From: Amphiscolops sp. MND2022
Lineage: Eukaryota
DNA length: 64,000 nucleotides
Reading direction: 5' to 3'
NCBI GenBank assembly: GCA_964187785.1
Contig: OZ076411.1
Location: 8,122,001 to 8,186,000 of the forward strand
Made by a program: the position numbers and the translations under genes. Within the stretch, counting starts at the first letter, position 1; every line of letters begins with the position of its first letter. This document shows, piece after piece, positions 34,587 to 61,020 of the stretch. A model generated the notes under the pieces. It searched no databases, was not told where the DNA came from, and saw nothing but the letters and a program-made list of their open reading frames with translations.

Positions 34587-34756
34587 ATAATTCAAGTCGA
34601 TAACATTTCGGCGAACACTGTAGAAAGTATTATTTGCTTGCTTAATTCTCTCATCTATTTGGGACAAAGTTCAAATCCGGAGAAATAAGTATTGCCATAT
34701 CTTTAAAAACTTCTGACGGGATGAAATGTTGATTGTTCAGGGGAAAATTCTGTCCA

Positions 34757-39299: not shown

Positions 39300-41230
39300 C
39301 ACTGTCTTACAGCAAAAAAGCCACATGGCCTAGTTTAGCGTCAGACCCTCAATCTTGGCCGCTTTTAGGAAGTGCTTCAGGTTTTCTTGGCGTTCTTGCT
39401 CGGAGCTGCCTGCAATGATCACATCATCAAGATATGGATGCATTCGCTTCAGGTAGTACCAGCGCACAAATGCTGTGCTTTCTCGTTGAATGGCCGATAC
39501 AGCGTTTGTGACCCCAAAGGAAAGTATGGTGAACTCAAAAAGACGTCCAATTACTTCACACGCGGTGAATGGCATGTCCTTGCGTTGGAGTGGGATTTGA
39601 TGATACGCAGACTTCAAATTGAGTTTCGAGAAAACAGTGTTCTCAGCTGGTTGATCAAGCAGGTCTTGCATATTTGGAAAAGGAAACGCATCCTTGGACG
39701 TATGACAATTTATTGTCTGCGAATAGTCGATCACCATCCGTGGCTTGGGACCGTCCCTAACGACAAGCCTTGTGCCCGCCAGGGAGACGTTGAAACTTGA
39801 ATGATGCCCTCAGTGAGCATGCTAATGAGTGAACATTGGACTCCATGAAAGCAACTTCTTGCAGTTTGTGCCGGCGCGATTTTGTAGCGATTGGTTTTGC
39901 ATTATAGACTGAACTGGAGAGTATGATCGGAGGGGCGATTTTTATTTCCGGGAAGACCAATTCATTGATCCTGTCACATATAACAGTCTCTGGTCGATCA
40001 CCACCTAACTCCAGTCTGACAGAGTGGTGTTGTCAGAAAACGCCAAGCCCGACAAAAACATCCGCAACAAGGTGTTTTGCGATTGTGAAGGTAACTTGGT
40101 AGGTCAAGACAGTCACCTTGCGTTTCGCGCGGACCTTCAGACCATATTTGGCAGATGTTGAGGCGCTGTGGACCCGGTATCAATCATCGCTTGAACTTGT
40201 TCATCGCTTCCACCAAGTTTGAGGTTCACATTTATATTCTTAGGCGGCAGTCCAGTACTTCACAAAAGATTTGCAGTCTCGAATTTGTCATCAGATGACT
40301 GTTGCAAGTCGGCAGCGGTCGATCCACATACCAACGCCCAGAGTCCTGCTTTGGAGCATTTGTGACAAGTGTCATATGTGGCTGGGCACTTTGAGCGTGG
40401 GTGCTGTTTTAGATCGCAGAACTGACAGCGCAGACAAGGCTTGTTCGCGACCTGTTGGGCAATGGACGTGCCAGTTCGATCAAGTTGTCGCCGTGTTTTC
40501 TGAGAGAACAGCTTGGCCGCAGCTACAAGTGAAGATTCAGCGCTTCGAAAAGTTTTCGAAAAATCACTGGAAAGTTCGATAGCACATGCAAGCGATATGC
40601 AGCTATCGATGTCAGCCTTGGAGTCTTCCAGCTCCAACAGTCTTGTCCGAATATCGTCAGAACTGAGCCCCAATAATAAGGCGTCTCGTACTAGATAATT
40701 TTGATGTGCTTGGACGGTCAGACTGGTGCTTTCGCAGTCCTCAACAAGTCGTTTCAGCCTTCCAGAAAGCTGAACGATGGGTTCGTTGTCTGTTTGACTG
40801 GCACTGAGCATTTGATGACGGGCAAAGAACACTCTAATGGGCTTCAACTCCTGTCTGTCCAACGTTCTCAGTGCGTCTGCAAACGTCGGAGAACTTTTGA
40901 GGAGGGTGAAATAGTCGGTGCTGACAATTTTACGAAGGTAAACTAATTTGTCAGCATCTTCGGTTGTGCCGCTGATTCGTAAACCGTCCTTGAAACATGT
41001 TGTCCGCCATTTCTACTTCTCGCAAGAAGGAGTTGATGGCAACTCGGGTGGTTTGAACTTGATGAGCGACAGAAGAAGGACTACAGCGCTTCAACAATTG
41101 CTACGAGGAACTGAAGAAAGTACGGTAGTAGCCGAATTGACAACTGTTACGAGGAACTTAAGGAAGTAACGTAGTAGCAGAATAGTGAAGTCGCCTCCCT
41201 GAAGACACCTTACGTGACTCAGCGCAGGCA
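39300..41230 (-). mobile_element. Degraded Ty3/Gypsy retrotransposon (gag and RT fragments)
   Basis: Gag with LVRDALLLGL…RTRLLE and Cys/His knuckles; RT …SAYHQIP…FGVTNAVSAIQR…YLDDVII. Confidence 0.85.
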
Positions 41231-41299: not shown

Positions 41300-41788
41300 T
41301 TTCTGAAGTACTCGATTCTTCGAGATAGAGCGAATTTCGCTGACGGCTTTTGGCTCGAGGTGGATGGCGTCTCTGGAAGTATGCTTTTCGACGCTCTAGA
41401 TGCTTCCCGATATGCCTCTCTAAACCAACCGGCGATCGTTGTTGCTCTCTAGGAGTCGATTTATTTAATCTCTTGGCTTGGTCAGGGATGTCTAGGCGGG
41501 GGAAACCGCGATACCGATGATCCTGAATGCAACTTCGGAGGCTGCTACAGCAAGGTCGGAGATGTTCCTGTCAAGAAATTGAGTTTTCCTGGTTGGTAAG
41601 TCGTTGCCTCTGACGAGGAGCACGATCAGAACGTACCGACCGTTTGCAAGTAAGAAGGGTCTTACTTCTTCAACATGTGCACCTGGCAGGACGAGGATAT
41701 TCGAGTTACGGATTGTCAGGTTCCTTCCTTGCGAATCCGTGATAATCAGGTTACGAGTGGGCGAGGTCTTGAAGTGGTGATCAAGCAT
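41300..41788 (-). pseudogene. SGNH/GDSL hydrolase-like relic
   Basis: IITDSQGR (block I), PGA (II), GNDL (III); manual translation near 41370 gives RDAIHL (block V, DxxH). Confidence 0.6.
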
Positions 41789-41876
41789 GAGGAATTATCA
41801 AATAAATTTAACGTGAAGAAAAACATTACTTGCTGGAAGTTTCTATTTGATAAGCATTCATCTGAAGCATACATAC

Positions 41877-42076
41877 NNNNNNNNNNNNNNNNNNNNNNNN
41901 NNNNNNNNNNNNNNNNNNNNNNNNNNNNNNNNNNNNNNNNNNNNNNNNNNNNNNNNNNNNNNNNNNNNNNNNNNNNNNNNNNNNNNNNNNNNNNNNNNNN
42001 NNNNNNNNNNNNNNNNNNNNNNNNNNNNNNNNNNNNNNNNNNNNNNNNNNNNNNNNNNNNNNNNNNNNNNNNNNNN
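41877..42076. other. Assembly gap (200 N)
   Basis: Run of N. Confidence 1.
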
Positions 42077-43162
42077 AGTTGTTGTGTAATTTGTTCTGAC
42101 GTACCACATTTAACAATTTTTTAAAAACATAAAATTACAGTCTAAGCTATTAGAGTTTGAGTTTGTTGGTAAATCATTTCGATTTTTGGTTACATTACGA
42201 ACTATGTGACCTCTGTCTTTCACAGTTGTTTGTCAAGTAACCCAAATGTTTCTCAACAGGTTATTAACGCTTCCAATGTTCTGCTGATTTTATAGATTTT
42301 CGGGGTTGAGAGTATCTTTTACGAGCTATAAAACTACATTCAGTGGATGGAAGTTCTTCGTTCTGATATACTGACCGGATGAACTGGTGACTCGAAAACG
42401 TTTCGAGGTTCGAGTGCTGGAGGACTTTTGTTTCCGTTTTCGGAATTTGAAGTTTTAAAGGGTTACAATCGCTGTACTACTACAGATATGCCCTCGGATT
42501 ACTGAACTGCATTAACTTTCTTTGTGTAGCCTTGGTATTTCGAGTTTTTCAACGAACTATGATTTCGAGGATTTTTGAAAAAACAACGCGGTGTGATTTC
42601 GATAAAAAACAAGAAACAAAAACGAATTATTTCAATAAAATAACAACGAGATGTGATTTGGAGTATTATCAACGCCATTACAGACACATCCCGGTAACGA
42701 AATAGCAGGATCCCAAAGATAATTCAGCATTTATTGACAAAGGCTACTTTGAAATTTAAACTATCAGCACTAGACAGTCACCGTACCATCTCTTTTTAAT
42801 TAAATGATTTTTCTCACTAACGTGTTGTTAGTTACTTGGTTAAACCAACCATCTGTTAGTTGGTTTACTAAATCAACCAGTAATTGCTTAGATGGTTACT
42901 TAGCCAGGTACAACTTGTTAAAACGTTCCTTACTAATTAGGTGGTTAATTTAGTGAAAGTATAAATAACAGTGCGAGAAACCAAAAAACAAAGCAAGTTG
43001 TTCGTACATAGAAATAAAAGACCCTGCCAATGAAGTTGAATTCTTTTTTTACCCGGTCCATATGTCCCGGGTCGGTCGTTTCAACCATTCGATCTCAAAC
43101 CAACACGACAAATCAGGTGCTGATTAACACACTGTTGCTATTTATATTAACCACATTAACCA

Positions 43163-43444
43163 ATGTCTGAAACTTGCGCTGTCTGTCAAGAGAATTTTTC
43201 TAACGGAGTGTGGATTCTCCACGACCAGCCTAACCACGTCCTGTGCAACGAGTGCCGTCAAGCCAGGATCCGAGTCCTCGAAAAGTAAGTTTCACAGAAC
43301 CCGTTTTAAAAACTGTTTTCGAAGCTGTTTTCACTTTGATGAATAACCATTGTGATTTACAGGGAAACCACTTACCGGGCCTTTCGGGTGGAGTGCCCTC
43401 TATGCAGAAAAGATGACTTCCCACTCATCATAAAGCGGTCATAA
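43163..43444 (+). CDS. 67-aa RING-variant protein, two exons (43163-43284, 43363-43444), apparently intact
   Basis: MSETCAVCQENFSNGVWILHDQPNHVLCNECRQARIRVLEK-ETTYRAFRVECPLCRKDDFPLIIKRS*. 78-nt intron GTAAGT…TTTACAG, phase 2. Confidence 0.8.
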
Positions 43445-43530
43445 ACATCATAAAGGCCAGTTGTCGTGGACTAAACTGTTTGATTCAACTTTTTTAAATT
43501 TGAAATGAATTTGAAATTCAATCTCAAAAC

Positions 43531-44325
43531 AAAAACAACGGGACGTGATTTCGATTGTTTTCAACAAAAACAACGGTATATGATTTAGGATAATTCCGAA
43601 AACAACAACGGGATGTGACTTGGATTTAATTTCAAAAGAAACAACGAGATGTGATTTAGGACAATTACAAAAACAACGGGATGTGATTTCGGATAATTTC
43701 AAAAAAACAACTGGATGTGATTTCGATTGATTTCAACAAAAAACAACGGATGTGATTTCGGATATTTTCAAAAAACAACGGGAATTTTTTTGATTGATTT
43801 TAACAAAAAACAACGGATTTTATATCGAATATTTCCAAAGAACAACGGGATGTGATTTCGATTAATTTCAACAAAAGCAACGGGATGTGATTTCTATTGA
43901 TTTCAACAAAAAACAACGGGATGTGATTTCGAAAATTTCAAAAAATAACAACGGGATGTGATTTCGATTGATTTCAACAAAAAACAACGGGATGTGATTT
44001 CGGAAAATTTCAAAAAATAACAACGGGATGTGATTTCGACTGATTTCAACAAAAACAAATAATGGAGTGTGCTTTCGGATAATTTCAAAAAACAACAACG
44101 GGATGTGATTTCGACTGATTTCAACAAAAAAAACAACGAGATGTGATTTCGAAGAATTTCAAAAAAACAACGGGTAGTAATTTTGATTGATTTTAACAAC
44201 AAACAACGGGGTGTGATATCGAATCTTTTCAAAAAAACAACCGGATGTAATTTCGATTGATTTCAACATAAACGTGATGTGATTTCGGATAATTCGAAAA
44301 CAAAAACAACGGGATGTGATTGCGA
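43531..44325 (+). repeat. Tandem array of motif AAAAACAACGGGATGTGATTTCG with variable A-rich linkers (array 1)
   Basis: About 20 units of about 30-40 bp between the convergent RING and JmjC genes. Confidence 0.95.
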
Positions 44326-44347
44326 GTGTTTTTAACAAAGTCGCGTT

Positions 44348-47300
44348 TCATTGTTGAAGCCATTTCTTGATGTCGGCCCAGCGCAGATCCGTCATTGTCT
44401 CTGAATAATAGTAGAGAAACTCATGCCATGGGTGCGATGTCTGCGATAGGCGATTGATTATTTCAAGCATCTTCCGAAGAGCGACTTTGCTGTTTGGGTC
44501 CGAACAGTATCGGTAAGACCACTCGCGGTATAGATGTATGACTACCAATGGTGCGAAATGAGGAAAGCTGAACTGATGTTTGAAGCCGTCCTTGATCCCC
44601 TTCTCGAAAGCCATAAATATGTTTTTCCACAATGAAATTACATTCAAACGCAATACTTTCCTCAGGGGTATAGACAAAGTGCATCCACCCACTCGGTAGG
44701 AAAAGACAGTCAACTCTTCTGAGCGCTACATGACGAACTGTCACTTGGTGATGGAAGCCAAAAAAAGTAGATGTTTTGAAGTCACTTCGTTGCCATTTGT
44801 CGAAAAGTTTTTGATTGCTTTCATTGTTTTCCAAAATGTAAAAATGTTTTCTGCCCTTGACAACAACGTAAAAAACAGATGTTCCTGTGAAGTCTTGATG
44901 CCAATTTGTTTGCGTTCCAGCCTCTGTCAGAAGCAAGTAATTACTGATTCCCGCTGTGAAATCATATTGATGTCGAAGAAAAGTGGGCAAAGCAGCCTTC
45001 ATGCGATGTCCATAAGAAATATTGCGAACGAGGTCGGGAGAAGAGAATTTATAGGACATATTGTTTAGATGGCCTTCAATGTCCAAATCGATCACGTTCA
45101 TTGGATGATAATCTGCTTGAAGCGTCTGGTTCTCGTTGTGAGTCAGCAGATCCATCAAATCAAACTCGTCCTCGACTTCTTGCAGAGAAGAAAAGCAAAC
45201 GTTTATCTTTCTTGTTAAAGGAAAGCCGTCCAAAACTTGACGAAAGCTCAACTCATCTTGGGGAATTTCAAGGCCAGGGAGAAGGTTTGTTCCATTCCGT
45301 ACCACAGCTGGTTTTAATTGACGAACACGCAATTCTGCTACTTCTTGAGAAGAAACATCTAAATCGTTGGTGGCGTCCTCCACGGCTGAAGATATAAACT
45401 GGTAAAATTGAGTAGAGCCAATTTCTACATCTTCGGGGGCAATCGCTGTGAAGCTTGTGATCCCAAGTTCTTCCTCGCCAGGTTGGATCTGAACTAAAAA
45501 TGATTGTTCTGCTGTTGCAAGTTCTTCCTCGCCAGGTTGGATCTGAACTAAAGTTGATTGTTCTGCTGGTGCAAGTTCTTCCTCGCCAGGTTGGATCTGA
45601 ACTAAAGTTGATTGTTCTGCTGGTGTAAGTTCTTCCTCGCCAGGTTGGATCTGAACTAAAGTTGATTGTTCTGCTGGTGCAAGTTCTTCCTCACCAGGTT
45701 GGGTCTGAAGTGAAGTTGATTGCGTTTGAATGTCCTTGCACTTCGCAGTTACTTGATGGCGAGTCAAGTCATGGCGCCTCGTTAACACAACTCCGCAAAA
45801 CTCGCACACGAACAAGTCTTTCTGTTTTTCTGAAAAAAACTTCTAAATGACCATTGCAAACGTTTTCTCTTCAATAAACAAAGTTACCGGGAGTTCACTA
45901 GATTTGCAAATTTTGTTTTCGACTAGTATTTTTTGAATTTCTAGAAACACACTTTTAGGTATTCAAAAAACTACGCGATAATGATACAGTTGGCTCTACT
46001 CAAAAACTGAAACTTGGTCGAATTGTCACAACAAATGACACGGTGTATTATCAAAACTTTGGATTTACTAGGTGGGGGAGACTCCAGGCTTTTGGGCTCG
46101 ATTCCTTGCCTTTTCGCAGCTTCACATCTCTGCAAGCAAGTCTTCTTAGACAAATGCTGCTTCAGACGTGTGGTGGTTGCGCAAACTAATCCACACTCGG
46201 GGCAAGTACAGTTTAGAACACTCTGGGACTTCCTATTCTGTTGCGCTGAAAAAGCAATCCTCTTTCAGATTTAAAAAAACTGAATAACAATACTGAAAGC
46301 GTACGCTTTTAAGTTTCTTGTTAGATATGTAAAAAGAAATATATTTATATGGACAATGACGTTTTAAAATGACAACTTAAAATCCTTGATGCTTTGAAAT
46401 GTCACAATATCAATTTGAAGATGTTGTGATTCCGAGTCAACGTGGTATGGTTGAGTAAAAAAACAACGTGATGTGATTTATCTTTTCAAAAAAACTTTAC
46501 AAAATGTCAAGTATTTTGAACGAAAAAACAACGGGATGTGATTTCGAGAAAAATTTAAAAAAAAAACAACGGATGTGATTTCGAGTAATAAAGAAAAAAC
46601 AACGGGATGTGATTTCGAGAAAATTCAACAAAAAACAACGGGATGTGATTTCGAGAACGTTCCACAATCGAAACAACGGGATGTGATTTCGAGTAATTCC
46701 AACAAAAAAACAACGGGATGTGATTTCGAGTAATTTCAACAAAAAAAACAACGGGATGTGATTTCGACAAAACTCAATAAAAAACAACGTGATGTGAGTT
46801 CGCAAAACGTTTCACGAAAAAAACAACTGGATGTGATTTCGAGTAATTTCAACAAAAATACAACGGGATGTGATTTTGAGTAATTTCAACAAAAAAAACA
46901 ACGGGATGTGATTTCGAGAACGTTCCACAATCAAAACAACGGGATGTGATTTCGAGTAATTCCAACAAAAAAACAACGGGATGTGATTTCGAGTAATTTC
47001 AACAAAAAAAAACAACGGGATGTGATTTCGACAAAACTCAATAAAAAACAACGGGATGTGAGTTCGCAAAACGTTTCACGAAAAAAACAACTGGATGTGA
47101 TTTCGAGTAATTTCAACAAAAATACAACGGGATGTGATTTTGAGTAATTTCAACAAAAAAACAACGGGACGTGATTTCGAGAAAATTCAATAAAAAACAC
47201 AACGGGATGTGATTTCGCAAAACGTTCCACGAAAAAAAAAAACAACGGGATGTGATTTCGAGTAATTTCAACAAAAAAACAACGGGATGTGATTTCGAAA

Positions 47301-47717
47301 CGTTCCACGAAAAAAAAACAACGTGATGTGATTTCGAGAACGTTCCACGAAAAACAACGGGATGTGATTTCGAGAACGTTCCACGAAAAAAACAACGGAA
47401 TGTGATTTCGTGTAGTTTCAACAAAAAAAACAACGGGATGTGGTTTCGAGAAAATTCAATGAAAAAACAACGGGATGTGATTTCCAGAAAATTCAAAAAA
47501 ACAACGGGATGTGATTTCCGGTGATTCCAACAAAAAACAACGGGATGGGATTACGAAAAAGTTCAACGCAGAAAACGCAGTTTCTAACTTTATTCTGAAT
47601 CGAAAACCTATTTTAAATATAATCAAGCTTACCCTGGCAAGACGCTTCATGTCGATTGTAGTACCATCTTTTGTTGGAGTCGAACTCTTTGAAGCAGTGA
47701 GCACAAGTGTACGTCAT
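44348..47717 (-). pseudogene. 3x C2HC zinc finger - 18-aa repeats - JmjC (KDM2/KDM7-like) gene; exons 47717-47633, 46245-46069, 45829-44348; one frameshift near 44620
   Basis: In-frame phase-1 splices (CAGG|GTAAGC; TTTCAG|CG; CCTA|GTAAAT; TTTCAG|AA). JmjC motifs TNWHQDFTGTSVFY, KGRKHF, LPSGWMHFVYTPEES retain H-x-D…H. The C-terminus continues in ORF 44348..44713 (FSFPHF). Confidence 0.85.
46459..47540 (+). repeat. Motif array 2, filling intron 1 of the ZnF-JmjC gene
   Basis: About 30 units of AACAACGGGATGTGATTTCG. Confidence 0.95.
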
Positions 47718-48699
47718 TACGTTCTGATTTGGAATATCTTGAATGACCAAATGATGGGGGAATGATGACCTGATGACAGTTGCTGTAGGTTGGTCAAAAT
47801 TTAGTTGATTAAACAAAAAGATAGAGGGTTGATGATCTGAAGACAGTTACTCTAGGATGATCAAAAGTTAATTGAATATTGTAAATGAAGGTGAAATGAA
47901 CTGATGACAGTTAGTCGATAGTTCCTTCCAAATAGGAGAGTCCTAGCGCTTCTCCAATTTGTAGTAGTTGTACTAAGTACTGTAAAAGTTTGTTTCAGGA
48001 TTTAATTGAGTTAACACAAAGTTAACGGAGCAAATCTGAAAACGTCTTGGTCGCTTTGAGGACAACAGTCAAATGAACATCGAATTCTTATTGTCCTCAA
48101 TACTTCTTTCCAGAATATTCTAGAACATTCGATTACTTCACAACTTTTCTATTCCGCTGCGCATGACTCAAAGTAGTCCCAATGAAAAGCAACGCGGAGT
48201 GATTTGTTTATTTAATTAACAACTGGTTACCTTTTTCTAGTCAATTTATTTGTTATTTTCGACGTTACTTTTGATTTCTGCTGCGAAGTCCCTGACTTTG
48301 TTCGTTTAAAAGTTAGCAAGAACAGTTTCTAGCATGAAATTAGTTTGCAAAAATTCGTTTGCATCACTAAAGCTTCTAGAACATTGTGTAAACCTTCAGA
48401 CGTAAACCTTTAGGAAATTGTAAAAATTATTTCCCGTTACTAGTTTTTGTTTAAGAATCTGATAGATACTGATAACTATTTCCTGTTTTCTGCTCGTTTT
48501 CTTTGAGGTCTCAGGTGGTTAAGAAATTTAGGGTTAGGATAAGAATGAATTATCGGTATCTGTTTTTAGTTGTTTCCGTCTTTTCGTTTTGGGGATTTCT
48601 TTGTTTCCGTTTTTCTTGTTTGTCCAGGTATCTCAGTTGTTAAACGTGTAATCAACGTGCAACGAAGTACAATGAACAATACATTTATCAAGTGACAAG

Positions 48700-49250
48700 T
48701 TGCATGCAATTACATATTATACACTCACGTCCAATTTGCTTGCGTAGACGAATTTTTACTAATTTCTTCACTCCCAAACATTTCTTTCACTTCAGGAAAC
48801 TGCCTAGTTCTGTATTTGATTTGATGAACTCGTCTATTATCCAGCACGATTCAAACGCAAGTTTGTTAGACGTGAGTGTATATTTGGATTTCCTGAGTTT
48901 TGATATGACTTCTTTCAGACAGACAATTCTGAAGATTCTTGCTTTCTTTGTTTCGGTTCCATGTTTCGGTTCCATGTTTCGTTTCAATGAGCTGTAAATG
49001 TAGAGTTGGGTAATAGAGGTTGAAGAAACCATAAATCAGCCGAAATTGTTGCTCGTGTTGGGCAATGGTGGATGAACACCCGCGAGATATAATTGTAGAG
49101 TTGGGTGATAGAGGATATCTATTGAAGAAACCATAAATCATCCGAAGTTGTTGCTCGTGTTGGGCAATGGTGGATGAACACTCACGAGATACAATGGTAG
49201 AGTTGGGCGATAGAGGGACGACGTAGATGCTTGCAGCCAGGTTGGGTTAT
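48700..49250 (-). pseudogene. Unidentified broken ORF with a ~33-aa tandem peptide repeat
   Basis: PLSPNSTI(V/I)SR(E/G)CSSTIAQHEQQ(L/F)R(M/L)IYGFFN twice, followed by frameshifted coding-like sequence (ORFs 48787..49032 and 48866..49141). Confidence 0.4.
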
Positions 49251-50899
49251 AAGGAAATATTTCGTAAAATAACAGTTCAAAACTTCGGAATCACAGAAAA
49301 TTCTGACATGAAATTCAGTTCACAATACAATAAGTATCACAAACACCTCAGAATCAAAAATGAGTTTTAGACTTCTGGAGAGTGTCTTACAAAAATCAGA
49401 TTGTTGGAAAAAATGTTTTGAATGTACAATTCAATAATTTCATCCCTGGCTGCAATTGTGACCGTCTGTGGGTTTCCTCATTGTTTCCTCAGCACTAACT
49501 GTTTGTAGAAACAAAGAAATGAAATTCAGCCGGGAGTGGCCCAAGTCAAAAACAGAAAGGTTGAGAAAAAATATGTATAGTGTCAAATACACTAAGGTGC
49601 ACAACACCGTTGGAAAAACTGATGCAAAGAAAGTATATAGAATTAGCAATATAGCCAATTAGCGGCCGCGCAATAGTTTTTATTACGACTAGAAAAACTC
49701 CCTTTATTCTCAAAAAGCTTAAACCTTGCAAAAAATCCCGACTTCCTTATTGACCTAATTTAGAGAGGGCTTTGTCCTGTCTCCTGAATACGACAGCGGC
49801 AAGCTTGATCTTCGTGTAGAGTCTGAGGTACTCGTCGTTTTTCAACGTGATTCCGGCCTCCTCACATCTCTTCTTAGTTTCCAACTCAGAGGCAGTCCCT
49901 CTTGTATCTTTGAACAGGGAGCAGGCCTTCTTGGAATCCTCGCTCCATTCGGGAAGACCCTTCCCGACTCTGAAGTTGGACATCGAAGTGTGGAACTTGG
50001 TGACCGCTTTGCCAACCGGTGAATCCCTTGGTGAGTTCCATGAATCCCGTTTTGGTGGGGCGCGAGGTATTTGTTGAGATTGTGACACCAGAGGCGTTTG
50101 CTGCGCACGAGGCAGTTGCTGCGCAGTCGCTGGAGGGGCCTCATGCATCGGGGGTGTCCTTACGGTAGATGTTTGAAAAGAGTCCCCGCCCAGATTAAAT
50201 CTGGCGACAGTCTCGACCTTCTGTAAACTGGGATAGAGTACTGGAAGTTCGGGCGACTCATCTTCCAAATCTGAGTCCAGCCGTTCATCAGGTGGGGCTT
50301 CTGACGATTTCTCGCTAAGACAGTCTTCGTCGTCTCTTCGATTCGCAAGTCGGTCAGAGTAAATGTCCAGCACGAGCGCTCTTTCTTCTTCCGTGCCGTT
50401 CCGATGCAAGTATTTCTCCCTCGCCGTCTTCTCGCTGTGAGCGGTCTGAGCGACGTGAGCTTTTGTGATACCATCGCTCACCTTGCTTTTTATAACGTTC
50501 CAGAGACGCTCCCAGAACTTCCAAATCGAATTAGCGTTATATCGCACTTTCTCGGGATTGTCTCCAAATAATTCCTGGAAACTTTCTTGGGGACCTCGAG
50601 AAATGCTTGTCTCCACCTTGTTGACGGACGATGCAAAAATGTATGAAGGCTCTGTATTGAATTCTTCGATGAACTTTGCCTTCATGGCCCTCAAAAACTG
50701 CCTTTGATCTGGTTGAAGGAAGATATGGACGGTATAATACTTGCCCGTTTTGTGGCTCGTCGTCAGGGCTTTGTCCGTCTTGTCAATTTCCTCAAATTCT
50801 TCCCAATTGAGGTTGAGAATGGGTCCGGATCTAGGTAAAAAGAATTTGTTCAGACAAGTATTTGGGAAAAATATGTTAAAGGTGTCATCTAGGATCGTT

Positions 50900-53800
50900 T
50901 AGGTTTTCAATTCATTTCAGGTGGTTTAACAAAACTGTTAGATACTTTAGTACACTTTCTCTTATGGGGGGGGGTCTTAAGGAGGATTTGGCTGTCAATT
51001 CAAACTTTCAAAAGTATTGAAATTGATTTCATTCAAAAATTTAAACCCCCTTCTGAACTTTCACTGTGAACTAATTCTTTGTATTGTTTTCACTGTTTGA
51101 ATGCTATCCATTGTGTTTTATGAAACTTTCTCCTAACAACCGGTGGCGGGGTGTGGAATAACGAACTGAATATAGATCATAAAACTTTTTGGGACTTCCG
51201 GTAAAACCCCCATTCCCCCCAGCGATTTATCCCCGTTACCAAAAGTCCTAAAAAGTTTCCTTATTGCTTCTAAAGTTCTGAAGTAAGACAATGGAATTTG
51301 TTGTTAAATGTTTGCTGGATTTTGCTTCGTTTTTATTCAATTCATTTCACGTGGTTTAACAAAATTGTTAGATACTTTAGTACACTTTCTCTTATGGGGG
51401 GTCTTAAGGAGGATTTGGCTGTCAATTCAAACTTTCAAAAGTATTGAAATTGATTTCATTCAAAAATTTAAACCCCCTTCTGAACTTTCACTGTGAACTA
51501 ATTCTTTGTATTGTTTTCACTGTTTGAATGCTATCCATTGTGTTTTATGAAACTTTCTCCTAACAACCGGTGGCGGGGTGTGGAATAACGAACTGAATGA
51601 AGATCATAAAACTTTTTGGGACTTCCGGTAAAACCCCCCATTCCCCCCAGCGATTTATCCCCGTTACCAAAAGTTCTAAAAAGTTTCCTTATTGCTTCTA
51701 AAATTCTGAAGTAAGACAATAGAATTTGTTGTTAAAGGTTTGCTGGATTTTACTTCGTTTTTATTCTGAAGTTGAACATCGAAGTGGGGAACTTGGTGAC
51801 CGCTTTGCCAACCGGTGAATCACTTGGTGAGTTCCATGAATCCCGTTTTGGTGGGACGCGAGGTATTTGTTGAGATTGTGACACCAGAGGCGTTTGCTGC
51901 GCACGAGGCAGTTGCTGCGCAGGCGCTGGAGGGGCCTCATGTATCGGGGGTGTCCTTACGGTAGATGTTTGAAGAGAGTCGCCGCCCAGATTAAATCTGG
52001 CGACAGTCTCGACCTTCTGGAAACTGGGATAGAGTACTGGAAGTTCGGGCGACTCATCTTCCAAATCTGAGTCCAGCCGTTCATCAGGTGGGGCTTCTGA
52101 CGATTTCTCGCTAAGACAGTCTTCGTCGTCTCTTCGATTCGCAAGTCGGTCAGAGTAAATGTCCAGCACGAGCGCTCTTTCTTCTTCCGTGCCGTTCCGA
52201 TGCAAGTATTTCTCCCTCGCCGTCTTCTCGCTGTGAGCGGTCTGAGCGACGTGAGCTTTTGTGATACCATCGCTCACCTTGCTTTTTATAACGTTCCAGA
52301 GACGCTCCCAGAACTTCCAAATCGAATTAGCGTTATATCGCACTTTCTCGGGATTGTCTCCAAAAATTTCCTGGAAACTTTCTTGGGGACCTCGAGAAAT
52401 GCTTGTCTACACCTTGTTGACGGACGATGCAAAAATGTATGAAGGCTCTGTATTGAATTCTTCGATGAACTTTGCCTTGATGGCCCTCAAAAACTGCCTT
52501 TGATCTGGTTGAAGGAAGATATGGACGGTATAATACTTGCCCGTTTTGTGGCTCGTCGTCAGGGCTTTGTCCGTCTTGTCAATTTCCTCAAATTCTTCCC
52601 AATTGAGGTTGAGAATGGGTCCGGATCTAGGTAAAAAGAATTTGTTCAGACAAGTATTTGGGAAAAAATATGTTAAAGGTTTCATCTAGGATCGTTTAGG
52701 TTTTCAATTCATTTCAGGTGGTTTAGCAAAACTGTTAGATACTTTAGTACACTTTCTCTTATGGGGGGGTCTTAAGGAGGATTTGGCTGTCAATTCAAAC
52801 TTTCAAAAGTATTGAAATTGATTTCATTCAAAAATTTAAACCCCCTTCTGAACTTTCACTGTGAACTAATTCTTTGTATTGTTTTCAATGTTTGAATGCT
52901 ATCCATTGTGTTTTATGAAACTTTCTCCTAACAACCGGTGGCGGGGTGTGGAATAACGAACTGAATGAAGATCATAAAACTTTTTGGGACTTCCGGTAAA
53001 ACCCCCCATTCTCCCCAGCGATTTATCCCCGTTACCAAAAGTCCTAAAAAGTTTCCTTATTGCTTCTAAAGTTCTGAAGTAAGACAATGGAATTTGTTGT
53101 TAAAGGTTTGCTGGATTTTACTTCGTTTTTATTCAATTCATTTCAGGTGGTTTAACAAAACTGTTAGATATTTCAGTACACTTTCTCTTATGGGGGGGTC
53201 TTAAGGAGGATTTGGCTGTCAATTCAAACTTTCAAAAGTATTGAAATTGATTTCATTCAAAAATTTAAACCCCCTTCTGAACGTTCACTGTGAACTAATT
53301 CTTTGTATTGTTTTCACTGATTGAATGCTATCCATTGTGTTTTATGAAACTTTCTCCTAACAACCGATGGCGGGGTGTGGAATAACGAATTGAATGAAGA
53401 TCATAAAACTTTTTGGGACTTCCGGTAAAACCCCCCATTCCCCCCAGCGATTTATCCCCGTTACCAAAAGTCCTAAAAAGTTTCCTTATTGCTTCTAAAG
53501 TTCTGAAGTAAGACAATGGAATTTGTTAATAAAGGTTTGCTGGATTTTACTTCGTTTTTATTCTGAAGTTGGACATCGAAGTGTGGAACTTGGTGACCGC
53601 TTTGCCAACCGGTGAATGCCTTGGTGAGTTCCATGAATCCCGTTTTGGTGGGCGCGAGGTATTTGTTGAGATTGTGACACCAGAGGCGTTTGCTGCGCAC
53701 GAGGCAGTTGCTGCGCAGTCGCTGGAGGGGCCTCATGTATCAGGGGTGTCCTTACGGTAGATGTTTGAAGAGAGTCCCCGCCCAGATTAAATCTGGCGAC

Positions 53801-54700
53801 AGTCTCGACCTTCTGGAAACTGGGATAGAGTACTGGAAGTTCGGGCGACTCATCTTCCAAATCTGAGTCCAGCCGTTCATCAGGTGGGGCTTCTGACGAT
53901 TTCTCGCTAAGACAGTCTTCGTCTCTTCGATTCGCAAGTCGGTCAGAGTAAATGTCCAGCACGAGCGCTCTTTCTTCTTCCGTGCCGTTCCGATGCAAGT
54001 ATTTCTCCCTCGCCGTCTTCTCGCTGTGAGCGGTCTGAGCGACGTGAGCTTTTGTGATACCATCGCTCACCTTGCTTCTTATAACGTTCCACAGACGCTC
54101 CCAGAACTTCTAAATCGAATTAGCGTTATATCGCACTTTCTCGGGATTGTCTCCAAATAATTCCTGGAAACTTTCTTGGAGACCTCGAGAATTGCTTGTC
54201 TCCACCTTGATGACGGACGATGCAAAAATGTATGAAGGCTCTGTATTGAATTCTTCGATGAACTTTGCCTTCATGGCCCTCAAAAACTGCCTTTGATCTG
54301 GTTGAAGGAAGATATGGACGGTATAATACTTGCCCGTTTTGTGGCTCGTCGTCAGGGCTTTGTCCGTCTTGTCAATTTCTTCAAATTCTTCCCAATTGAG
54401 GTTGAGAATGGGTCCGGATCTAGGTAAAAAGAATTTGTTCAGACAAGTATTTGGGAAAAAATATGTTAAAGGTTTCATCTAGGATCGTTTAGGTTTTCAA
54501 TTCACTTCAGGTGGTTTAACAAACTGATAGATACTTTAGTACACTTTCTCTTATGGGGGGGGTCCTAAGGAGGATTTGGCTGTCAATTCAAACTTTCAAA
54601 AGTATTGAAATTGATTTCATTCAAAAATTTAAACCCCCTTAGTTCTGAAGTAAGACAACGGAATTTGTTTTTAAAGGTTTGCTGGATTTTACGTTTTTAT
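50900..54700. repeat. ~430-bp intronic sub-repeats interleaved with ~1.8-kb duplications of the YR exon
   Basis: Near-identical units at about 50910, 51330, 52700, 53130 and 54500 (last one truncated). Confidence 0.85.
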
Positions 54701-55254
54701 TCAAGAAGTGTTTTCGGAATCTCATGAAGTTAGTTCAGTTATTCAACTCGTCACCCGATAGGATCCCCCCTGTCAGCACAATGTAAATTCTCTGGTAATG
54801 TAAATGGTTTAATTAGGTTGTTTAATACGCGTCACTATGTAATCATTGTGATACAGCGCGTGCAGCACACGTTGTAAAACAATGTAATGTATTATAATAT
54901 GTCTTGCATACAACGTGTATTAGATTGTACGTGCACTTCAATGCGTGCTCACGGTGTATGTTTTGCATATACTGGAAATCACTACTAAATCCAGCGCATA
55001 TGGTTTCAAACACGTAATTTACAATCAGAGTTTTTTCCACGAAATTGCTCAGGTTTTTTTCAATTTTGTGCTTCTTAATCTCCTCACTTCCTTTCGGCAG
55101 AATACAGTTTTCGTTACCAATCAATTTTAGGTCTATAAAAAGACTATTTTTATAGAGACTCTTTTTAAAAAGATGTTATTTAAAAAGTTGCAGTTATCTG
55201 GCTGCTGCTGAGAAGTGGACAGCTTAGTCTTTGGATTTTTTATATACTCTTAAA

Positions 55255-55815
55255 TTAAAACAATGAAAAAAACAGCGAGATGTGATTTCGAGTAGAAATA
55301 ATAAAAAAACGACGTAATGTGATTTCAAGTAGAAATAATAAATACAACAGGTTGTGATTCCGAGTATATTCAACAGAAAAACAACGGGATGTGATTTCGA
55401 GTAAAAACAATGAAAAAAAAACAACGGGATGTGATTTCGAGCAGAAATAATAAAAAAAAACAACGGCATGTGTTTTCGAGTAGAAACGATGGAAAAAACA
55501 ACAGCATGTGATTTCGAGTAGAAACAATGAAAAAAACAACGGGATGTGATTTCGAGTAGAAATAATAAAAAAACAACGGGATGTTATTTCGAGTAGAAAT
55601 AATAAAAAACAACGGCATGTGTTTTCGAGTAGAAACATGAAAAAAAAACAAAAGGATGTGATTTCGAGAAGAAACAATGAAAAAGCTAACGGGATGTGAT
55701 TTCGAGTAGAAAAACAAATTAACGGGATGTGATTTCGAGTAAAAAAAAATAAAAAACAACGTGATGTCATTTCGATTAAAACTAATGAAAAAACAACGGG
55801 ATGTGACTTCGAGTA
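55255..55815 (+). repeat. Motif array 3, inside intron 2 of the SET-YR gene
   Basis: About 14 units of AACAACGG(G/C)ATGTGATTTCGAGTAGAAA. Confidence 0.95.
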
Positions 55816-58800
55816 GAAACGATGAAACGAAACAACTTTACCAACCTTGTATTGATCCGAGCTTGTAGGAGGAAAAAGTTGAGTGCCTGTTGCTTCCTGT
55901 ACGATAGTGTATTTTGTTGCATATTTGTAGTTAAAATTTCCAGCACTTGTCGGTACCTTAACCTGACTTGTTCATTGCTGGGTACAAGAGCTAACATTTT
56001 TTCTGAAGCTTGATGCGCATTCAAAGCTGCTGGACTGAAGGCTTTGCGTGCGGCTGCTATGGCAGCTTTCATCCGGTCAAATCCATCGTCACATTTCGCA
56101 ATCTCCCTGTTGAGGTAGCATTGATCCACGAAAAGCTTGAAAATCGACAGATAGTTCAGCATAGTCTGCGGCTTCAGGTTCTTCGCAGTCTTCATCTCAA
56201 GACACCCCTTGACAAGAAGCTCGGGGGATCTCAGAGAGCGCGTCATATTGAAAATCTGCGCCATCAGTTTCACAATGCCCCCCCTGTCAAGGCTCCACTT
56301 GCGATTCTCACCACTGCACTTGGAAATATCTGTCTGAAATTGGACGAAGCGCTCAGCAACATCCAAGTCTCTCGAGCTTGGCAAAAAGTTTGACTTCGCT
56401 GCCGCTCTGATTTCTGCTGGCAACGAACTTCTGCTCTCCGGGTTGGGCACTTTGACGATAGTGGAACAGTCACACTTGTTGACGTGCTTGTGGGTGATTA
56501 TAGAGGCAAATCGTGTGAAGCACTTTGCACAATCATAAACAACTTTCCTCTGGGTCTTGGCGTTCCTGCATCTATAAAAAGCCAAGCAGAAACGTCGCGG
56601 TCTTTCGTCAAAGATGTCTGATTGCCTTTGAACCAGATGCCTATCGATTCGATTTATCTCTGAATGGCCGCTGTACTTCGCCGTGAATCTTGAGCGGCAA
56701 CCTCAATTTCCTTAGGAAGGGGCAATTGACCCTCCTCTGGTGTTGCTGCAGCAGGGGGGCTTAGTTGAGCGGCCACGTCAAGTTCCTCCGGAAGGGGCAA
56801 TTGATCATCCTCCTGTGTTGCTGCAGCAGAGGGGCTTAGTTGAGCGGCAACCTCAATTGGCGTAGTCTTCTTGGACGCACACGAAGGGCATTTGCAGTCA
56901 ACATTGCCAGGCCCAAAGTAGTCATCTGTGTAGGATACTGTTAGTTCTTCCCCCGCACCAAAGCTCTTTTTGTCTTTATAAAGATAAATGTTGAATTTCT
57001 CTCACCACGACAAATGTACTAGCAATTTGGTTCGCAGTTGTGATTTATGAAACTGTCTGGGCCCAACATAACCATGTCGTTGATTCCCGGTCTTTTGAAG
57101 TAGGAGAACTGGCTGGATCGCGGCAGCTGGTCCTTCTTCACTTTCGCACCGAATCCCTTCATACCCCCTATTTCGGTGTCCTTCTGAATGTCTTCTCTCG
57201 CAACCACTGCCATCTCTGAGAAACTAGTGTAGTTTCCATACGATGGCATATTAACATATTTCACAAACTCCATGCTCTGAATGTAACTTGTGTAAATCAT
57301 AGAATACAATTTTTTGTGCTTTTTGTCGCTCGAAATCAATTGTTCCACATCAGGGTGTTGTTGACAGAGTTTGTGACTTTTTGTGAAAACATCGTCAATG
57401 AGCTGCGCGGTAATTTTTGCATCCAAAAAACCCAGAATCTGCCAGGCTTCGTAGCAATGCTTCGTTATCAAATAGTCCTAAAACATTTCAAAGTTAGGTC
57501 AAAAACGACAATTTTTAATTCCATCACAAGTTTTGACGTTTGCTAATTACAGGTTTGGTTCTCTCGAACTAAGCTTTCCTGAGAAGCAGTATTTGGCAAA
57601 AAAAGAAAAACTACCGTTTTAAAATTGCAGACGTTTACTGCTTACTGAAAACAAAGTGTCTTAAAACAGGGAGCAGAACAATCCCATATTTTCAGATGCC
57701 ATTTTAAAGTCGATGAAAACATACAAAACGTTTAGAAGTTTAATTCTTTGATTTGCCAATGATTACCTTTGTAAATTCCTCCGCCTTGTGGAATTCATTT
57801 TGAACCACGCTCACTGTTGCCCTCTTACACTGCTCATTGTGATTAGGAATCGTTTCCAGGTCAAAAGCGTAATCCATGAAAAGGAAAGTTTCAGAGCTTG
57901 CATAGCTAATGCACTGGACTACTGGGGGTCTTTCAGACGTCAAAACATGGGCGAAGTTTGCCATTGCAAGTAAGACTGGGAGTGGGTCAGTCTTCTCAGC
58001 ATGTTTTCGGCAGTCCACATTTTCTGGCACATCAACAAAAGTAATAGATGGCTCCTTTCTCACATTCTTCGATTGTCTTGGACAGTCTTGCGTTTCCGAC
58101 TGTTCTGCAAAAGTCGAACTTGAGATTGGGAGTGGATCTGTAACTGTGTTGTTTCTTACCCTCTTTGATTGTCTTCGACAATCTTGCGTTTCCGACTCTT
58201 CCGCAAAAGTCGAGTTTAGGACTGAGAGTGGCTGTGTAACTTTTTCAAGGTTGTTAAATATTTTTTTCACGCAAAAGTTTGAACAGGCCTCTCATTGATA
58301 ATTATTGAAAAACACACTACCGTGGAAAGCATTGTGTTATTCACAACGATTTATCATTTTTTGTCAAATTTTTCGTTCTTCAAAATTTCAACAAAGGAAC
58401 ATAAAGCATGAAAGTTATTCAAAGAGTTTGTTTTGGAAGAATGTTTGGAAAAACAGTTTTCAAAATCGTTTTTTTGGCAGTTAATTCAGGTGTTTTTTTC
58501 AACAACCTTGTTCGGATGGCTTCGCATTGTTTTTTGTGGCTATCGGGGAGATTTGAAGTGCTCTTCCTCTCAGTTGACGGGGCATTTTAATGAATTGAAG
58601 TTTGGAATGGGAAACTAAGATAAAAGTGATTGAGAATTTCAAAAGATTGAAGATTCAAAATAGTTGATCGCAGAAGCAAAGTTGGTTCTGTGAAGTCGAA
58701 TTGGTTGAACGATTGGAGAAAAGATTTTCTCTAGTTTTTAGACGGATGTAGTTGTGTTAAGATTGAGAATTTCAAGTGAATGAAGATTCGTAGTTGATCG

Positions 58801-59442
58801 CAGAAGCGAAGTTGGTTTTATGGGTTCTTTCGCGGACGTCTTCGATATTTATACCCTGTTAATTACTTGTTAATCAATAAGTTGGTGTCAAGTACTCGAC
58901 CCTCCTACAGGGCCTTCGGTCATGGTTGATTTATATGGACTTTTTCATCACATCCAAAGATCCCCAAGCGTACTTTTACATTTTAAGTTGTCACTGATAA
59001 TTGCTTCCTTCCTATTATCCTCGTTGTGGCACAAGTCAGTGCTTTAAATTGTTACGCCGAATAATTATAAATTGGCATGTCCTAATCAACCAAACTACTG
59101 CGTAAATGGTGTGGTCACGTGACTAGGCAACAAGTCGAAGCAATGGCGAAATAGTTTTTGAACCCCCAAATAAATATGGCGAAATAATCCAACTTAAGGT
59201 GATTTATGAAAGTCTTTCACGAGTCTTGAGACGAGTTGTCAAAACGATATTCCTATTACGGGTAACCATTTGTCAGATACTTGGTGAACCAAGAAATGAG
59301 AAAAACAAGTATTCTTGCAATTGTACTGTGAATATATCATGGTGAGTTGGCCAGATTGGTAAAAGTGACAATAGGACCCGAAAAATATTTCATTGCTAAA
59401 CCAAACTCATTTTCTGAAGTCGTTACTTATTGAAAACAAAGA

Positions 59443-59575
59443 AAATCACACCGCGTTGTTATTTCTTAGAATTACTCCGACTCACATCGCGTTGTTGTTT
59501 CATTTCAATACACGAAATCACACCGCGTTGTTATTCCATTGAAATACTCGAAATCACACTGCGTTGTTATTTCAC
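59443..59575 (-). repeat. Inverted-orientation copies of the cassette motif (GAAATCACACCGCGTTGTT); another at about 60746
   Basis: Reverse complement of AACAACGCGGTGTGATTTC seen at about 42585. Confidence 0.8.
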
Positions 59576-59752
59576 TGAGATAGCTCTCTGAAAATATTTT
59601 TTAAACTCTAGAAAGCGCTAGTCTTCGACAAGAATTTGCTCATTCAAGATGAAAAAGATGAAAACAATCAAAAATTATTTCTTCATAACTTTTAAATAAA
59701 AAATTAAATAAAAACTAAAAAGGCATAATAGTTTCCAGACACTAAGGGTTTT

Positions 59753-60327
59753 TCAGACACTTGCGTCAAATTTGACACGTCTTGGGTGTTCGCTGGGCAA
59801 ATCGTCGGCTCGACAAGTTTTCTCTATTGCTGCCTTAAGCGGTTTGCTAAAACCAGCTATGGTCACGTGGACGCCGTCTTTTCTAAACCAGTTTCTTTTT
59901 TCGTCAGCTCTGAAAAAGGGGACATCGTTCCTCGCGCAGGCCTTGCACAACTCCTCCTTATGGTTCCCTGGAAGGGCCGGCCGTTTACCGATAACGGTTA
60001 ACATTTCCACGCCTCTTTGCTCCAGTTCACTCCCCACTTTCCGAAGGTGAACTGCTATTTGTTCTGGGTTTTGTCGATACTTCTTTAAACTTTGGAACCT
60101 TGGGTCTTCTGTTGGGAAACTGTTGAGTAAAATATCTGCATAGATAATTATCAGTCGGGGAGACTTTTTAGAGCAAGGGCAAAAGGGTTTTGCCACCTCC
60201 GCGGGTTTTCTTTCTCGTGAAGGGTCCTTGCACCAGAGGCCCAGATGCATTCTGTATTTTTCTCAAAGCCACAGTCTTTGAAAATCCTGCCGTTGGAGGC
60301 AGCCACCACAATAATTTTTGACATCCT
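59753..60327 (-). pseudogene. SGNH/GDSL-like protein with one frameshift near 60165
   Basis: MSKIIVVAASNGRIF…WASGA…(frameshift in A-run)…IIIYADILLNS…RKDGVHVT. The block V DGVH motif is present. Confidence 0.55.
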
Positions 60328-60844
60328 GGCACGGTATTGATAATGAGTGTTTGATTTTAGGAGTATGATCAATTTTATGATTTCAGTGAAAAGTTTGAAT
60401 CAGCGAATGGATAGATTCAAACAATTTCTCTCTGGTGAAGACTCTTTTTTGACTCAATCAAGTCCATGAAAACCAAATGTACGCAAATACTCCGTTTATA
60501 CATTTATACATGGCAGGTATAATATTAATCATTACAATGAACATATAATTTGTACTTTTCCATCCTTGCCGGCTACATTTCCATCGTTGCCAGCATCTTT
60601 GCCAACAAAGTCTGTTTTTCTATTCAGAAGTTCTTTCACTTTAGGTGAAAACTAGAAGCTTGAAGGCTTGAATGAAGATGTTGGAATTTCTCCCCCTAAT
60701 AAAGTTTTTTTGAAAGGGCGGTGCTTGGGAGTTGAAAACACTTGAAATCACACCGCGTTGCTATTTCATTTAATAGTCTCGAAGTCACGATATTGTATCA
60801 TTAAGATATAAAGTTATACATATTTATTACATTCATAAAAGTCT

Positions 60845-61020
60845 CGAAGGACGATGGCAGCTACAACGCTAACCATTTCGCCACCCGCCTAGCCTTGAGC
60901 AAGAACACGGTCAAGTGCAGCGAGCACAGAATTTACTTGAAGTTTGTCTCATCAGCTGACAGCATGGCGAACTAATACCACTGGGGGATTGGGTAGACTC
61001 AAGACGATACAGCATAAGAA
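60845..61020. mobile_element. Possible SINE fragment
   Basis: A-box-like TGGCGAAATGG on the minus strand and a CCTTGAGCAAGAACAC core-like motif; no B box. Confidence 0.3.

Follow-up and report, generated by a model that had tools for sequence, protein, structure and literature searches.

A decayed candidate tyrosine-recombinase transposon bearing SET- and JmjC-encoding genes in an animal genome

What kind of genetic unit places a SET domain, a tyrosine recombinase (YR) and a JmjC domain side by side in an animal genome? The question is raised by a 64,000-nucleotide stretch of DNA from Amphiscolops sp. MND2022 (contig OZ076411.1, positions 8,122,001 to 8,186,000). This whole stretch is called the window herein, and its G+C content is ∼40%. 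An earlier reading of the sequence (the original prediction) proposed that the window holds a decayed YR mobile element with its own chromatin genes. It listed a SET-YR fusion gene, a zinc-finger (ZnF) JmjC gene, a mini RING gene and a further open reading frame (ORF), and each of these features was found at about the coordinates it gave. The best explanation for the data described below is that positions 42077-60803 are a dead, end-truncated copy of a multicopy YR DNA element of at least 18 kb, residing in an animal genome and most likely moving in the manner of Cryptons. We assign this explanation a probability of roughly 0.7. The element is a repeated unit of several genes for which one end is defined and young copies are intact, and the YR is its sole recombinase candidate. 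The copy in the window is dead and end-truncated.

The genes of this copy are given below. SET-YR, ZnF-JmjC and ORF190 lie on the minus strand, and the RING-like gene lies on the plus strand. Handles such as L001 denote loci elsewhere that carry related sequences.

42077-60803, minus strand: decayed copy of the repeated element, colinear with L001/L003, L007/L009 and L002
43163-43284 and 43363-43444, plus strand: two exons of the RING-like gene (67 amino acids), with a GTAAGT...CAG intron and an unbroken frame
44351-46242, minus strand: ZnF-JmjC/Cupin_8 gene
58291 down to 49750, minus strand: gene for a SET domain (Pfam PF00856), C2H2-like fingers and the YR
59753-60324, minus strand: ORF190, earlier called SGNH-like, frameshifted

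If this is a mobile element, then its genes should be multicopy, should travel together and should share a boundary with other copies. Each of these was observed, the boundary at one end. When the catalytic exon of the YR was used as the query, an exhaustive HMMER search yielded 109 cluster representatives. At 90% identity, the clusters contain 11+7 members for the N-terminal part of SET-YR, 16+8 for the YR exon, 18+4 for JmjC and 15 for ORF190. The element block is present on roughly 30 contigs of a single ENA assembly (ERZ25074608), a number that is approximate because some copies are allelic or lie on duplicate contigs (the flank of L003 is 100% identical to that of L008). JmjC and SET-YR occur together on at least 10 contigs. 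Two subfamilies, and every copy that is sufficiently long, share the gene order ORF190, SET-YR, JmjC, RING.

The older subfamily, which is decayed, includes the window copy with L002 and the locus L001/L003/L008. The DNA of the window copy is 94-95% identical to L001/L003, ∼88-93% identical to L007/L009 and 98.5% identical to L002. The last of these has the same flank as the window copy, and is either allelic or a very recent sister copy. The young subfamily consists of L007, L009 and L012-L015, in which all ORFs within the fetched DNA are open and have 96-100% protein identity to L007. The joint decay of most genes in the window is as expected for a dead transposable element rather than for host genes, as originally proposed. 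One further locus, L016, is an internal-deletion derivative that lacks the YR and retains ORF190, part of SET, part of JmjC, and RING. Other transposons have inserted into copies of the element, including Maverick-like, BEL/Pao-like and Gypsy elements in L014, L015 and L009. The pPolB gene in L014 belongs to such an insertion and is missing from the other copies. To our knowledge, BEL/Pao elements occur only in Metazoa. Since they are found inside or beside copies of the element, the host of these copies is an animal, which agrees with the animal-like genome that had been predicted.

The boundary shared among copies is located on the ORF190 side. L007, L009, L012 and L013 begin at one exact base, where (TA)n is followed by ATATCGATGACAATTTAAAG..., and their flanks are unrelated. 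Together with the repetition, the intact young copies, the deletion derivative and the nested insertions, this end typifies a transposon family rather than a host gene cluster. In the window, the following features relate to this end.

46337-46414, minus strand: 75-bp module upstream of JmjC, which in complete copies recurs, in direct orientation, immediately inside the outer terminus
60742-60803, minus strand: last inverted copies (60742-60788) of the minisatellite motif described below, and the junction at which the window departs from complete copies

Complete copies at five other loci extend 600-790 bp past the point that matches 60803. The window copy is therefore truncated by ∼790 bp on the ORF190 side, and 60803 was rejected as the true end of the element. 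The limits proposed originally, 42580-60770, were nearly right in place but too narrow. Homology to other copies actually reaches 60803 on the right, which is the truncation point, and 42079 on the left, where homology with L001/L003 arrives at the edge of a run of N.

The known terminus contains nested inverted repeats (L007 5336-5440; L012 and L013 from 8692), namely GACAATTTAAAGTCC / GGACTTTAAGTTGTC and CGATGACAATTTAAA / TTTAAAATGTCATCG. It also contains the sequence ATATCG(A)TGAC, which recurs at the truncation junction in the window (60793). Judging from their sequences, these inverted repeats and ATATCG(A)TGAC are a possible recombinase site. A 16-bp near repeat (AGTCTCGAAG..CGAT, 14/16 identical) flanks the 60803 junction at 60771-60787 and 60836-60851, and resembles a degenerate minisatellite unit. 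In L013, an inverted 180-bp piece of the terminal region (7794-7971) lies 0.7 kb outside the terminus. A different SET-encoding gene is present 8 kb upstream of this same young copy (L013 1-487, minus strand) and has no DNA similarity to the copy.

The identity of the recombinase is central to the proposal. Across 26 relatives with identities as low as 16%, the YR family keeps R23, H49-K50-T-G, SIR126-K, H154 and GHS..Y163. In this set, the individual residues R23, K50 (in HKTG), R126 (in NSIRK), H154 and Y163 either never vary or are conserved in at least 90% of the sequences, and the histidine of the HxxR motif is mostly replaced by asparagine. An AlphaFold model of the L007 YR exon has a core with predicted local distance difference test (pLDDT) values of 86-98. 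When this model was compared with the PDB by using Foldseek, all 15 of the top 15 matches were tyrosine recombinases or YR-like proteins. These include a Staphylococcus aureus integrase (probability 0.96), XerA, the lambda Int core (template modeling score 0.47), Tn1549 Int, Flp, XerD and XerH. The assignment as a YR is made because the catalytic positions are conserved and the top fold matches are exclusively recombinases. DUF3504, the signature of CryptonA, and DUF3435, that of Starship captains, have no match among the 26 relatives (DUF3504 at E up to 1). Among the genes called across 17 kb of L007 there is no reverse transcriptase (RT), RNase H, DDE transposase, Rep/helicase, capsid or polymerase family, and the L007 element contains no additional long ORF.

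The SET domain precedes the YR in the same gene. For L007, the nearest solved relatives of this domain are KMT5B/SUV420H1 (E 5e-13) and SUV420H2. The motifs INH.C.PNC, GEE...Y and C.C..C and a SUV4-20-type cluster of post-SET cysteines are common to L007 and KMT5B. In the window, the SET-YR gene has the following parts.

57762-58291, minus strand: upstream exon with 96-bp repeats, equivalent to L007 9218-9718
57761-57478, minus strand: GT..AG intron after the upstream exon
55841-57477, minus strand: exon for SET (SUV4-20-like), a linker, C2H2-like fingers and the N-terminal domain of the YR
55258-55836, plus strand: minisatellite array 3, inside the long intron
53556-54478, minus strand: catalytic exon of the YR, copy 1, with a stop codon (54112-54110) at the catalytic arginine and a 1-bp deletion near 53652; truncated
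51753-52685, minus strand: catalytic exon, copy 2, with an in-frame stop (52409-52407) and tryptophan for the catalytic arginine; truncated after approximately amino acid 294
49750-50898, minus strand: catalytic exon, copy 3, with an open frame, tryptophan for the second catalytic arginine, and the C-terminal helical domain

The long intron splits the codon for the first catalytic arginine. We infer this splice junction because intronless relatives of the gene, which are described below, read straight through the same position. The linker in the exon at 57477-55841 carries 75-bp repeats and is accompanied by two C2H2-like fingers. Three lesions break this exon, namely an in-frame TAG (57021-57019) and deletions of 1 bp near 56954 and of 133 bp near 56669, and its counterpart in L007 is one open reading frame. 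Further damage is evident in the catalytic exon, which has been tandemly triplicated as a 1796-bp unit whose copies are 97-99% identical. L002 has two copies of this exon versus three in the window. The second catalytic arginine is missing from all three window copies, having been replaced by tryptophan in two and by a stop codon in the third. When compared with intact copies, most genes in the window thus exhibit the joint decay that had been noted, with stops, frameshifts, deletions and an exon triplication, and only the RING-like gene is unbroken.

The JmjC gene of the window consists of an upstream C2H2-like exon and two coding segments that lie in different frames. These are as follows.

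46155-46242 (approximately), minus strand: upstream C2H2-like exon
45815-44610, minus strand: main ORF
44614-44351, minus strand: C-terminal part, in another frame

The frame is shifted by an 11-bp deletion near 44614. Among young copies the ORF is intact, with lengths of 578-651 amino acids. The nearest solved relatives of the L007 protein are PHF8 (E 3e-24), KDM7, KDM2A and PHF2 (E 3e-24 to 4e-16). In the alignment of L007 with PHF8, WHQDF pairs with FHIDF, KGRK with KGEK, and GWIHFV with GWIHAV, such that the H.D...H iron ligands and the lysine that contacts 2-oxoglutarate (KG.K) align. On the basis of these sequence comparisons, the key motifs of both SET and JmjC are intact in young copies. 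Pfam finds Cupin_8/JmjC only, with no PHD or CXXC reader domain, the part that directs substrate choice in the KDM7/PHF8/KDM2 demethylases, in the JmjC protein. The N-terminal part contains C2H2-like fingers and acidic 18-amino acid repeats, encoded by a 54-bp repeat that is present in ∼10 copies in L007 (19098-19618) and in 4.8 copies in the window (45464-45722). An 88-bp inverted repeat around the L007 JmjC gene was considered as the ends of a nested transposon and rejected. It is a duplicated zinc-finger exon that is missing in the older subfamily.

The other two genes are less readily classified. The mini RING gene of the original prediction is present as an unbroken two-exon ORF, but its identity as a RING protein depends on matches to seven RING-type Pfam models at E 1e-4 to 1.6e-2, all of which fall below the curated cut-offs. 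RING fingers have eight cross-brace zinc ligands, and the sequence of this gene has the pattern C-x2-C ... H-x4-H-x2-C-x2-C ... C-x2-C. Exon 1 is 95% identical in L001/L003 and 78% identical in L016, and the exon 2 region has nucleotide matches at the end of L007. ORF190 contains a 1-bp deletion near 60171 in the window and is intact at 190 amino acids in young copies. The proposal that it encodes an SGNH hydrolase found no support beyond motif resemblance. SGNH/GDSL hydrolases have blocks I, II, III and V (GDS, G, GxND, DxxH) and a flavodoxin-like fold, and loose resemblances to such blocks (AASNG, SGART, DGVH) were all that could be found for ORF190. The family has no Pfam match at E up to 10 and no match among PDB sequences, a homologue search gave nothing usable, and the AlphaFold model has a pLDDT of 40. 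An additional ORF fragment is located in L007 at 17307-17600 on the plus strand, just before array 2, and ends in a C-x2-C...H...C finger (CAYCFKEFDSNKKWYYNRHEASC). One possibility is that it is an exon from a gene that went unrecognised.

The original prediction also described a ∼20-bp motif that ties the genes together. The core of this motif, AACGGGATGTGATTTCGA, has 64 matches at three or fewer mismatches, all of which lie in 42585-60759, and shuffled sequences are expected to give 0.07. The motif is therefore confined to the element as proposed. However, it is not a scattered motif but the core of a 36-37-bp minisatellite, whose remaining clusters are as follows.

42585-42662, plus strand: two subterminal copies of the core, with the same small cluster in L016
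43528-44339, plus strand: array 1, period 36/71 bp
46523-47567, plus strand: array 2, period 37/75 bp, ∼28 units
59443-59573, minus strand: short inverted cluster

The motif copies at 42585 (plus) and 60742 (minus) were considered as terminal inverted repeats, but homology between copies of the element extends past both. The counterpart of array 1, which measures 0.8 kb in the window, spans at least 17.6 kb in ctg185902, a 1.05-Mb contig (L010 11500-20888, L011 3050-20687). In L003, the flank is 100% identical over 2948 bp, yet the array is just 0.8 kb compared with at least 17.6 kb in ctg185902. This gap in length is either an extreme length polymorphism or a difference in assembly.

Relatives in other datasets reveal which parts of the element are old. 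The pairing of SET with the YR is retained at 27-56% YR identity. L004 has 49% identity, L005 (from another sample) has 42%, and L006 has 27% with a SET ORF directly upstream. Compact intronless SET-YR genes are present on contigs of 3.3 and 6.3 kb. In L017, a contig from GenBank whole-genome shotgun data, the frame is broken by one stop, and P0041, from a Joint Genome Institute (JGI) sample, is a single ORF of 895 amino acids. KMT5B/C are again the top matches for the SET domains of both. The minisatellite was not found in L004, L005 or L006. The SET-YR fusion is thus old, and this lineage acquired JmjC, RING, ORF190 and the minisatellite. All 22 relatives recovered by a word search lie in unannotated ENA assemblies, and none is in a named protein record. 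In searches of other collections, P0041 as a query gave no match, a closer alignment gave only L017, and P0041 was the sole result of a word search in which it served as the query. The protein cluster P0220 has a YR that is 41% identical to the L017 protein. Its 71 members at 90% or greater identity come from one ENA assembly, which points to a high-copy relative in another genome.

When the two subfamilies are compared, the ratio of nonsynonymous to synonymous substitution rates (Ka/Ks) amounts to 0.20-0.28 in the N-terminal domain of the YR, 0.30-0.37 in JmjC and 0.30-0.67 in the catalytic part of the YR, values that derive from small counts and are inflated because each pair includes one dead copy. 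The element, its flanks and host genes (window, L007, L008, L012) have observed/expected CpG ratios of 0.96-1.0, compared with 0.8 for other transposons in the window. Judging from base composition, which bears no sign of CpG decay caused by methylation, germline CpG methylation seems not to be acting here. If so, histone marks would be the relevant silencing layer.

These observations suggest how the element might function. The spliced product of its core gene would be a single protein with a length of at least roughly 1,150 residues. In order, this protein would contain an N-terminal extension, a SET domain of the SUV4-20/KMT5B type, a pair of C2H2-like fingers, and the YR with its N-terminal, catalytic and C-terminal helical domains. 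By analogy with known YR transposons, we infer that this recombinase drives mobility. It would excise the element as a circle and re-insert it by site-specific recombination, as has been proposed for Cryptons (PMC3212892, PMC13465315), and insertions would be placed beside (TA)n tracts. The lineage represented in the window would carry as cargo the ZnF-JmjC gene (PHF8/KDM7/KDM2 type), the small RING-like gene, the 190-amino acid ORF and three arrays of the family-specific 37-bp minisatellite. The SET domain might target or mark chromatin at histone H4 lysine 20 (H4K20), either at integration sites or on the element, and the JmjC enzyme might act on the chromatin of the element itself by stripping repressive methyl marks. 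The minisatellite arrays could serve as binding platforms for the zinc fingers of the element. A broader proposal is that the element belongs to an undescribed superfamily of YR DNA transposons whose recombinase has long been fused to a SUV4-20-type H4K20 methyltransferase domain, and of which at least one lineage resides in an animal genome. Through the gain of a PHF8-like demethylase, a RING protein and minisatellite platforms bound by zinc fingers, one lineage would have grown to at least 18 kb. The element would then place and remove histone marks, either on its own chromatin or at its targets. This broader proposal is tentative, and we think it somewhat more apt to need revision than to stand as worded.

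The remainder of the window places the element among host genes and other transposons.

2724-11250: apparent host genes (Pus10, cyclin-like and C2H2)
13.6-41.9 kb: run of transposons, comprising a Copia-like element, a long interspersed nuclear element (LINE) that encodes endonuclease and RT, and part of a Gypsy-like element
41877-42076: run of N, with the candidate element directly to its right

The host ORFs are cyclin-like (4073-5080), Pus10 (5135-6598) and C2H2 zinc-finger (10129-11250). Pus10 is a single uninterrupted ORF of 487 amino acids, and its lack of introns suggests that the host genome is that of an intron-poor animal. Within 13600-26800 and 28000-34700, there are internal tandem duplications of a 1926-bp Copia-like unit (five copies) and a 1308-bp LINE unit (four copies). 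These units are 99-100% identical, which parallels the triplication of the 1796-bp YR exon unit. Such near-identical tandem duplications across the window could reflect a biological tendency or an assembler artefact. To the left of the N run, a Gypsy-like gag/RT fragment and a 100-amino acid ORF that precedes it are located at 41495-41794, 40263-41012 and 39333-39809, all on the minus strand. The 100-amino acid ORF contains GDS-like and GxND-like strings, has no Pfam match and is unrelated to ORF190. Scans of the window for Rfam families and tRNAs gave no matches.

Several observations weigh against the interpretation that we favor. The Foldseek E-values of the YR model are weak (0.06-1). Only one of the 26 YR relatives matches the Pfam Phage_integrase family (PF00589), at E 1.8e-4, and no recombinase was found when PDB sequences were searched with a profile of the YR family. 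Ka/Ks values are weakly below 1 for SET (0.53-0.96) and ORF190 (0.43-0.79), again from small counts. Older copies stop at varying points on the ORF190 side. On the RING side, L001, L003, L007 and L016 end within ∼0.5 kb of the point matching 42079, before a terminus is reached, and the long contig ctg185902, when followed in the same direction, enters at least 17.6 kb of satellite. No terminal repeats, flanking direct repeats, empty sites or circle junctions were therefore seen, and the junction microhomology by which Crypton insertion is defined would need both ends of one copy. Finally, JmjC, RING and ORF190 were not found within ±10 kb of SET-YR in L004, L005 or L006, and could be passengers without a role in the life of the element.

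This last finding suggests a narrower alternative, in which the mobile unit is a simple SET-YR element only. JmjC, RING, ORF190 and the arrays would then be adjacent sequence, either another repeat or host genes that were captured and play no role, and the 18-kb block would have been amplified as a whole by a different route, for example satellite-associated or segmental duplication. The compact intronless genes of L017 and P0041 are consistent with this alternative, as are three JmjC fragments on contig 13723 that occur without SET-YR, the recurrence of the 75-bp outer-end module just upstream of JmjC, and the capacity of the array on the JmjC side to expand to at least 17.6 kb. However, the gene order is constant across two subfamilies that differ to the extent of ∼88-93% DNA identity, and it can be followed in the deletion derivative L016. 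JmjC has the Ka/Ks values given above and is intact in many young copies, and the shared start base with unrelated flanks in four young copies places ORF190 inside the unit. Moreover, the 88-bp inverted repeat around JmjC is a zinc-finger exon duplicate rather than a transposon end. We therefore consider the simple element unlikely.

A host gene cluster, composed of chromatin enzymes and a domesticated recombinase and multiplied by segmental duplication, would also yield repeated blocks that are not transposons. Only one terminus has been seen, no target-site repeat or empty site was observed, tandem duplication is abundant in the window, and domesticated Crypton recombinases are common in animals (PMC3212892). 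Yet a cluster of this kind would not readily account for blocks on roughly 30 contigs with unrelated flanks beginning at one exact base in four copies, nor for an internal-deletion derivative and nested transposons. Many copies have been pseudogenised in different ways, while others are intact at 99-100% identity. Domesticated Cryptons have lost catalytic residues (PMC3212892), but young copies of this element keep R, K, R, H and Y. These facts make a host cluster quite improbable. Least probable of all is that the visible part belongs to a larger unit, either a YR retrotransposon of the DIRS/Ngaro/PAT type or an integrated virus, with its other genes located farther out. An ORF for an SGNH-type hydrolase is present in some Ngaro elements, and the Gypsy-like gag/RT fragment is located just left of the N run. 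This fragment, however, is part of an unrelated Gypsy-type element (82% identical to the pol gene beside L006) and is found in no other copy of the element that was examined. The searches did not establish ORF190 as an SGNH hydrolase, none of the RT, RNase H, capsid or polymerase families is present in the 17 kb of L007, and the pPolB of L014 was inserted. A multicopy YR DNA element that includes all four genes remains the explanation that we prefer.

Operationally, the element is of the Crypton type, that is, a DNA transposon with a YR, and it has cargo like that of Starships, although it carries the sequence signatures of neither CryptonA nor Starship captains. Like Cryptons (groups CryptonA/I/F/S; PMC3212892, PMC13465315), it has a YR as the only recombinase candidate, no RT, accessory domains, introns, and multiple copies that include non-autonomous deletion derivatives, and the one end that can be read has no long terminal repeats. 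Unlike animal Cryptons (CryptonA/I), it lacks DUF3504, and Pfam YR models are matched by just one of 26 relatives. Accessory proteins and domains of Cryptons, as listed in 2026, are C48 peptidase, GCR1_C/HTH and a DDE gene (PMC3212892, PMC13465315), whereas the accessory domain here is a SUV4-20-type SET. Cryptons are also only a few kilobases long, in contrast to the four genes, satellite arrays and at least 18 kb of this element. The Starships of filamentous fungi (PMC10104507) are likewise large YR elements with accessory cargo that varies between lineages. The present element differs from them in its animal host, its lack of DUF3435, its far smaller size and its gene arrangement, with ORF190 preceding the YR gene at the known end, whereas the captain YR of a Starship is the first gene at one end. 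Starships carry metabolic or adaptive cargo, unlike the chromatin-enzyme homologues carried here.

The two enzymes can be compared with host proteins in the same manner. The SET core and post-SET cysteines, including those of L017 and P0041, align with KMT5B and KMT5C (SUV4-20H1/H2), which are H4K20 di- and trimethyltransferases. In contrast to these proteins, the SET domain described here, a putative methyltransferase, forms the N-terminal part of the recombinase of a repeated element. The iron ligands H.D...H and the 2-oxoglutarate lysine of PHF8, KDM7A and KDM2A are conserved in the JmjC protein, which differs from them by having C2H2-like fingers and 18-amino acid acidic repeats in place of PHD or CXXC domains, and by being encoded inside a repeated element.

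Other transposons are known to carry epigenetic factors. Examples are retrotransposons with cytosine methyltransferases, VANDAL elements with the anti-silencing protein VANC, and chromoviruses with chromodomain integrases. DIRS elements with a methyltransferase domain also exist (PMC13465315). In each of these cases, as is proposed for the present one, chromatin marks are written, erased or read by a factor that a mobile element encodes. Unlike DIRS, Ngaro, PAT and VIPER, the element has no RT/RNase H gene beside its YR, and the RT nearby is of the Gypsy type. Neither a SET-recombinase fusion nor JmjC as transposon cargo was found in the full-text literature searched.

The relatives recovered by word search all lie in unannotated ENA assemblies, which indicates that standard annotation misses the family. 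If the SET-YR protein is the transposase, then a histone-methyltransferase fold has been recruited to transposition. This would represent a new form of coupling between integration and chromatin, akin to that of chromodomain integrases. The finding would also extend cargo-carrying YR elements, which so far are known from fungi, to animals. The presence of writer-like and eraser-like enzymes on one transposon may provide a handle on histone-based silencing in animals, especially in a genome where the observed/expected CpG ratio is near 1.0.

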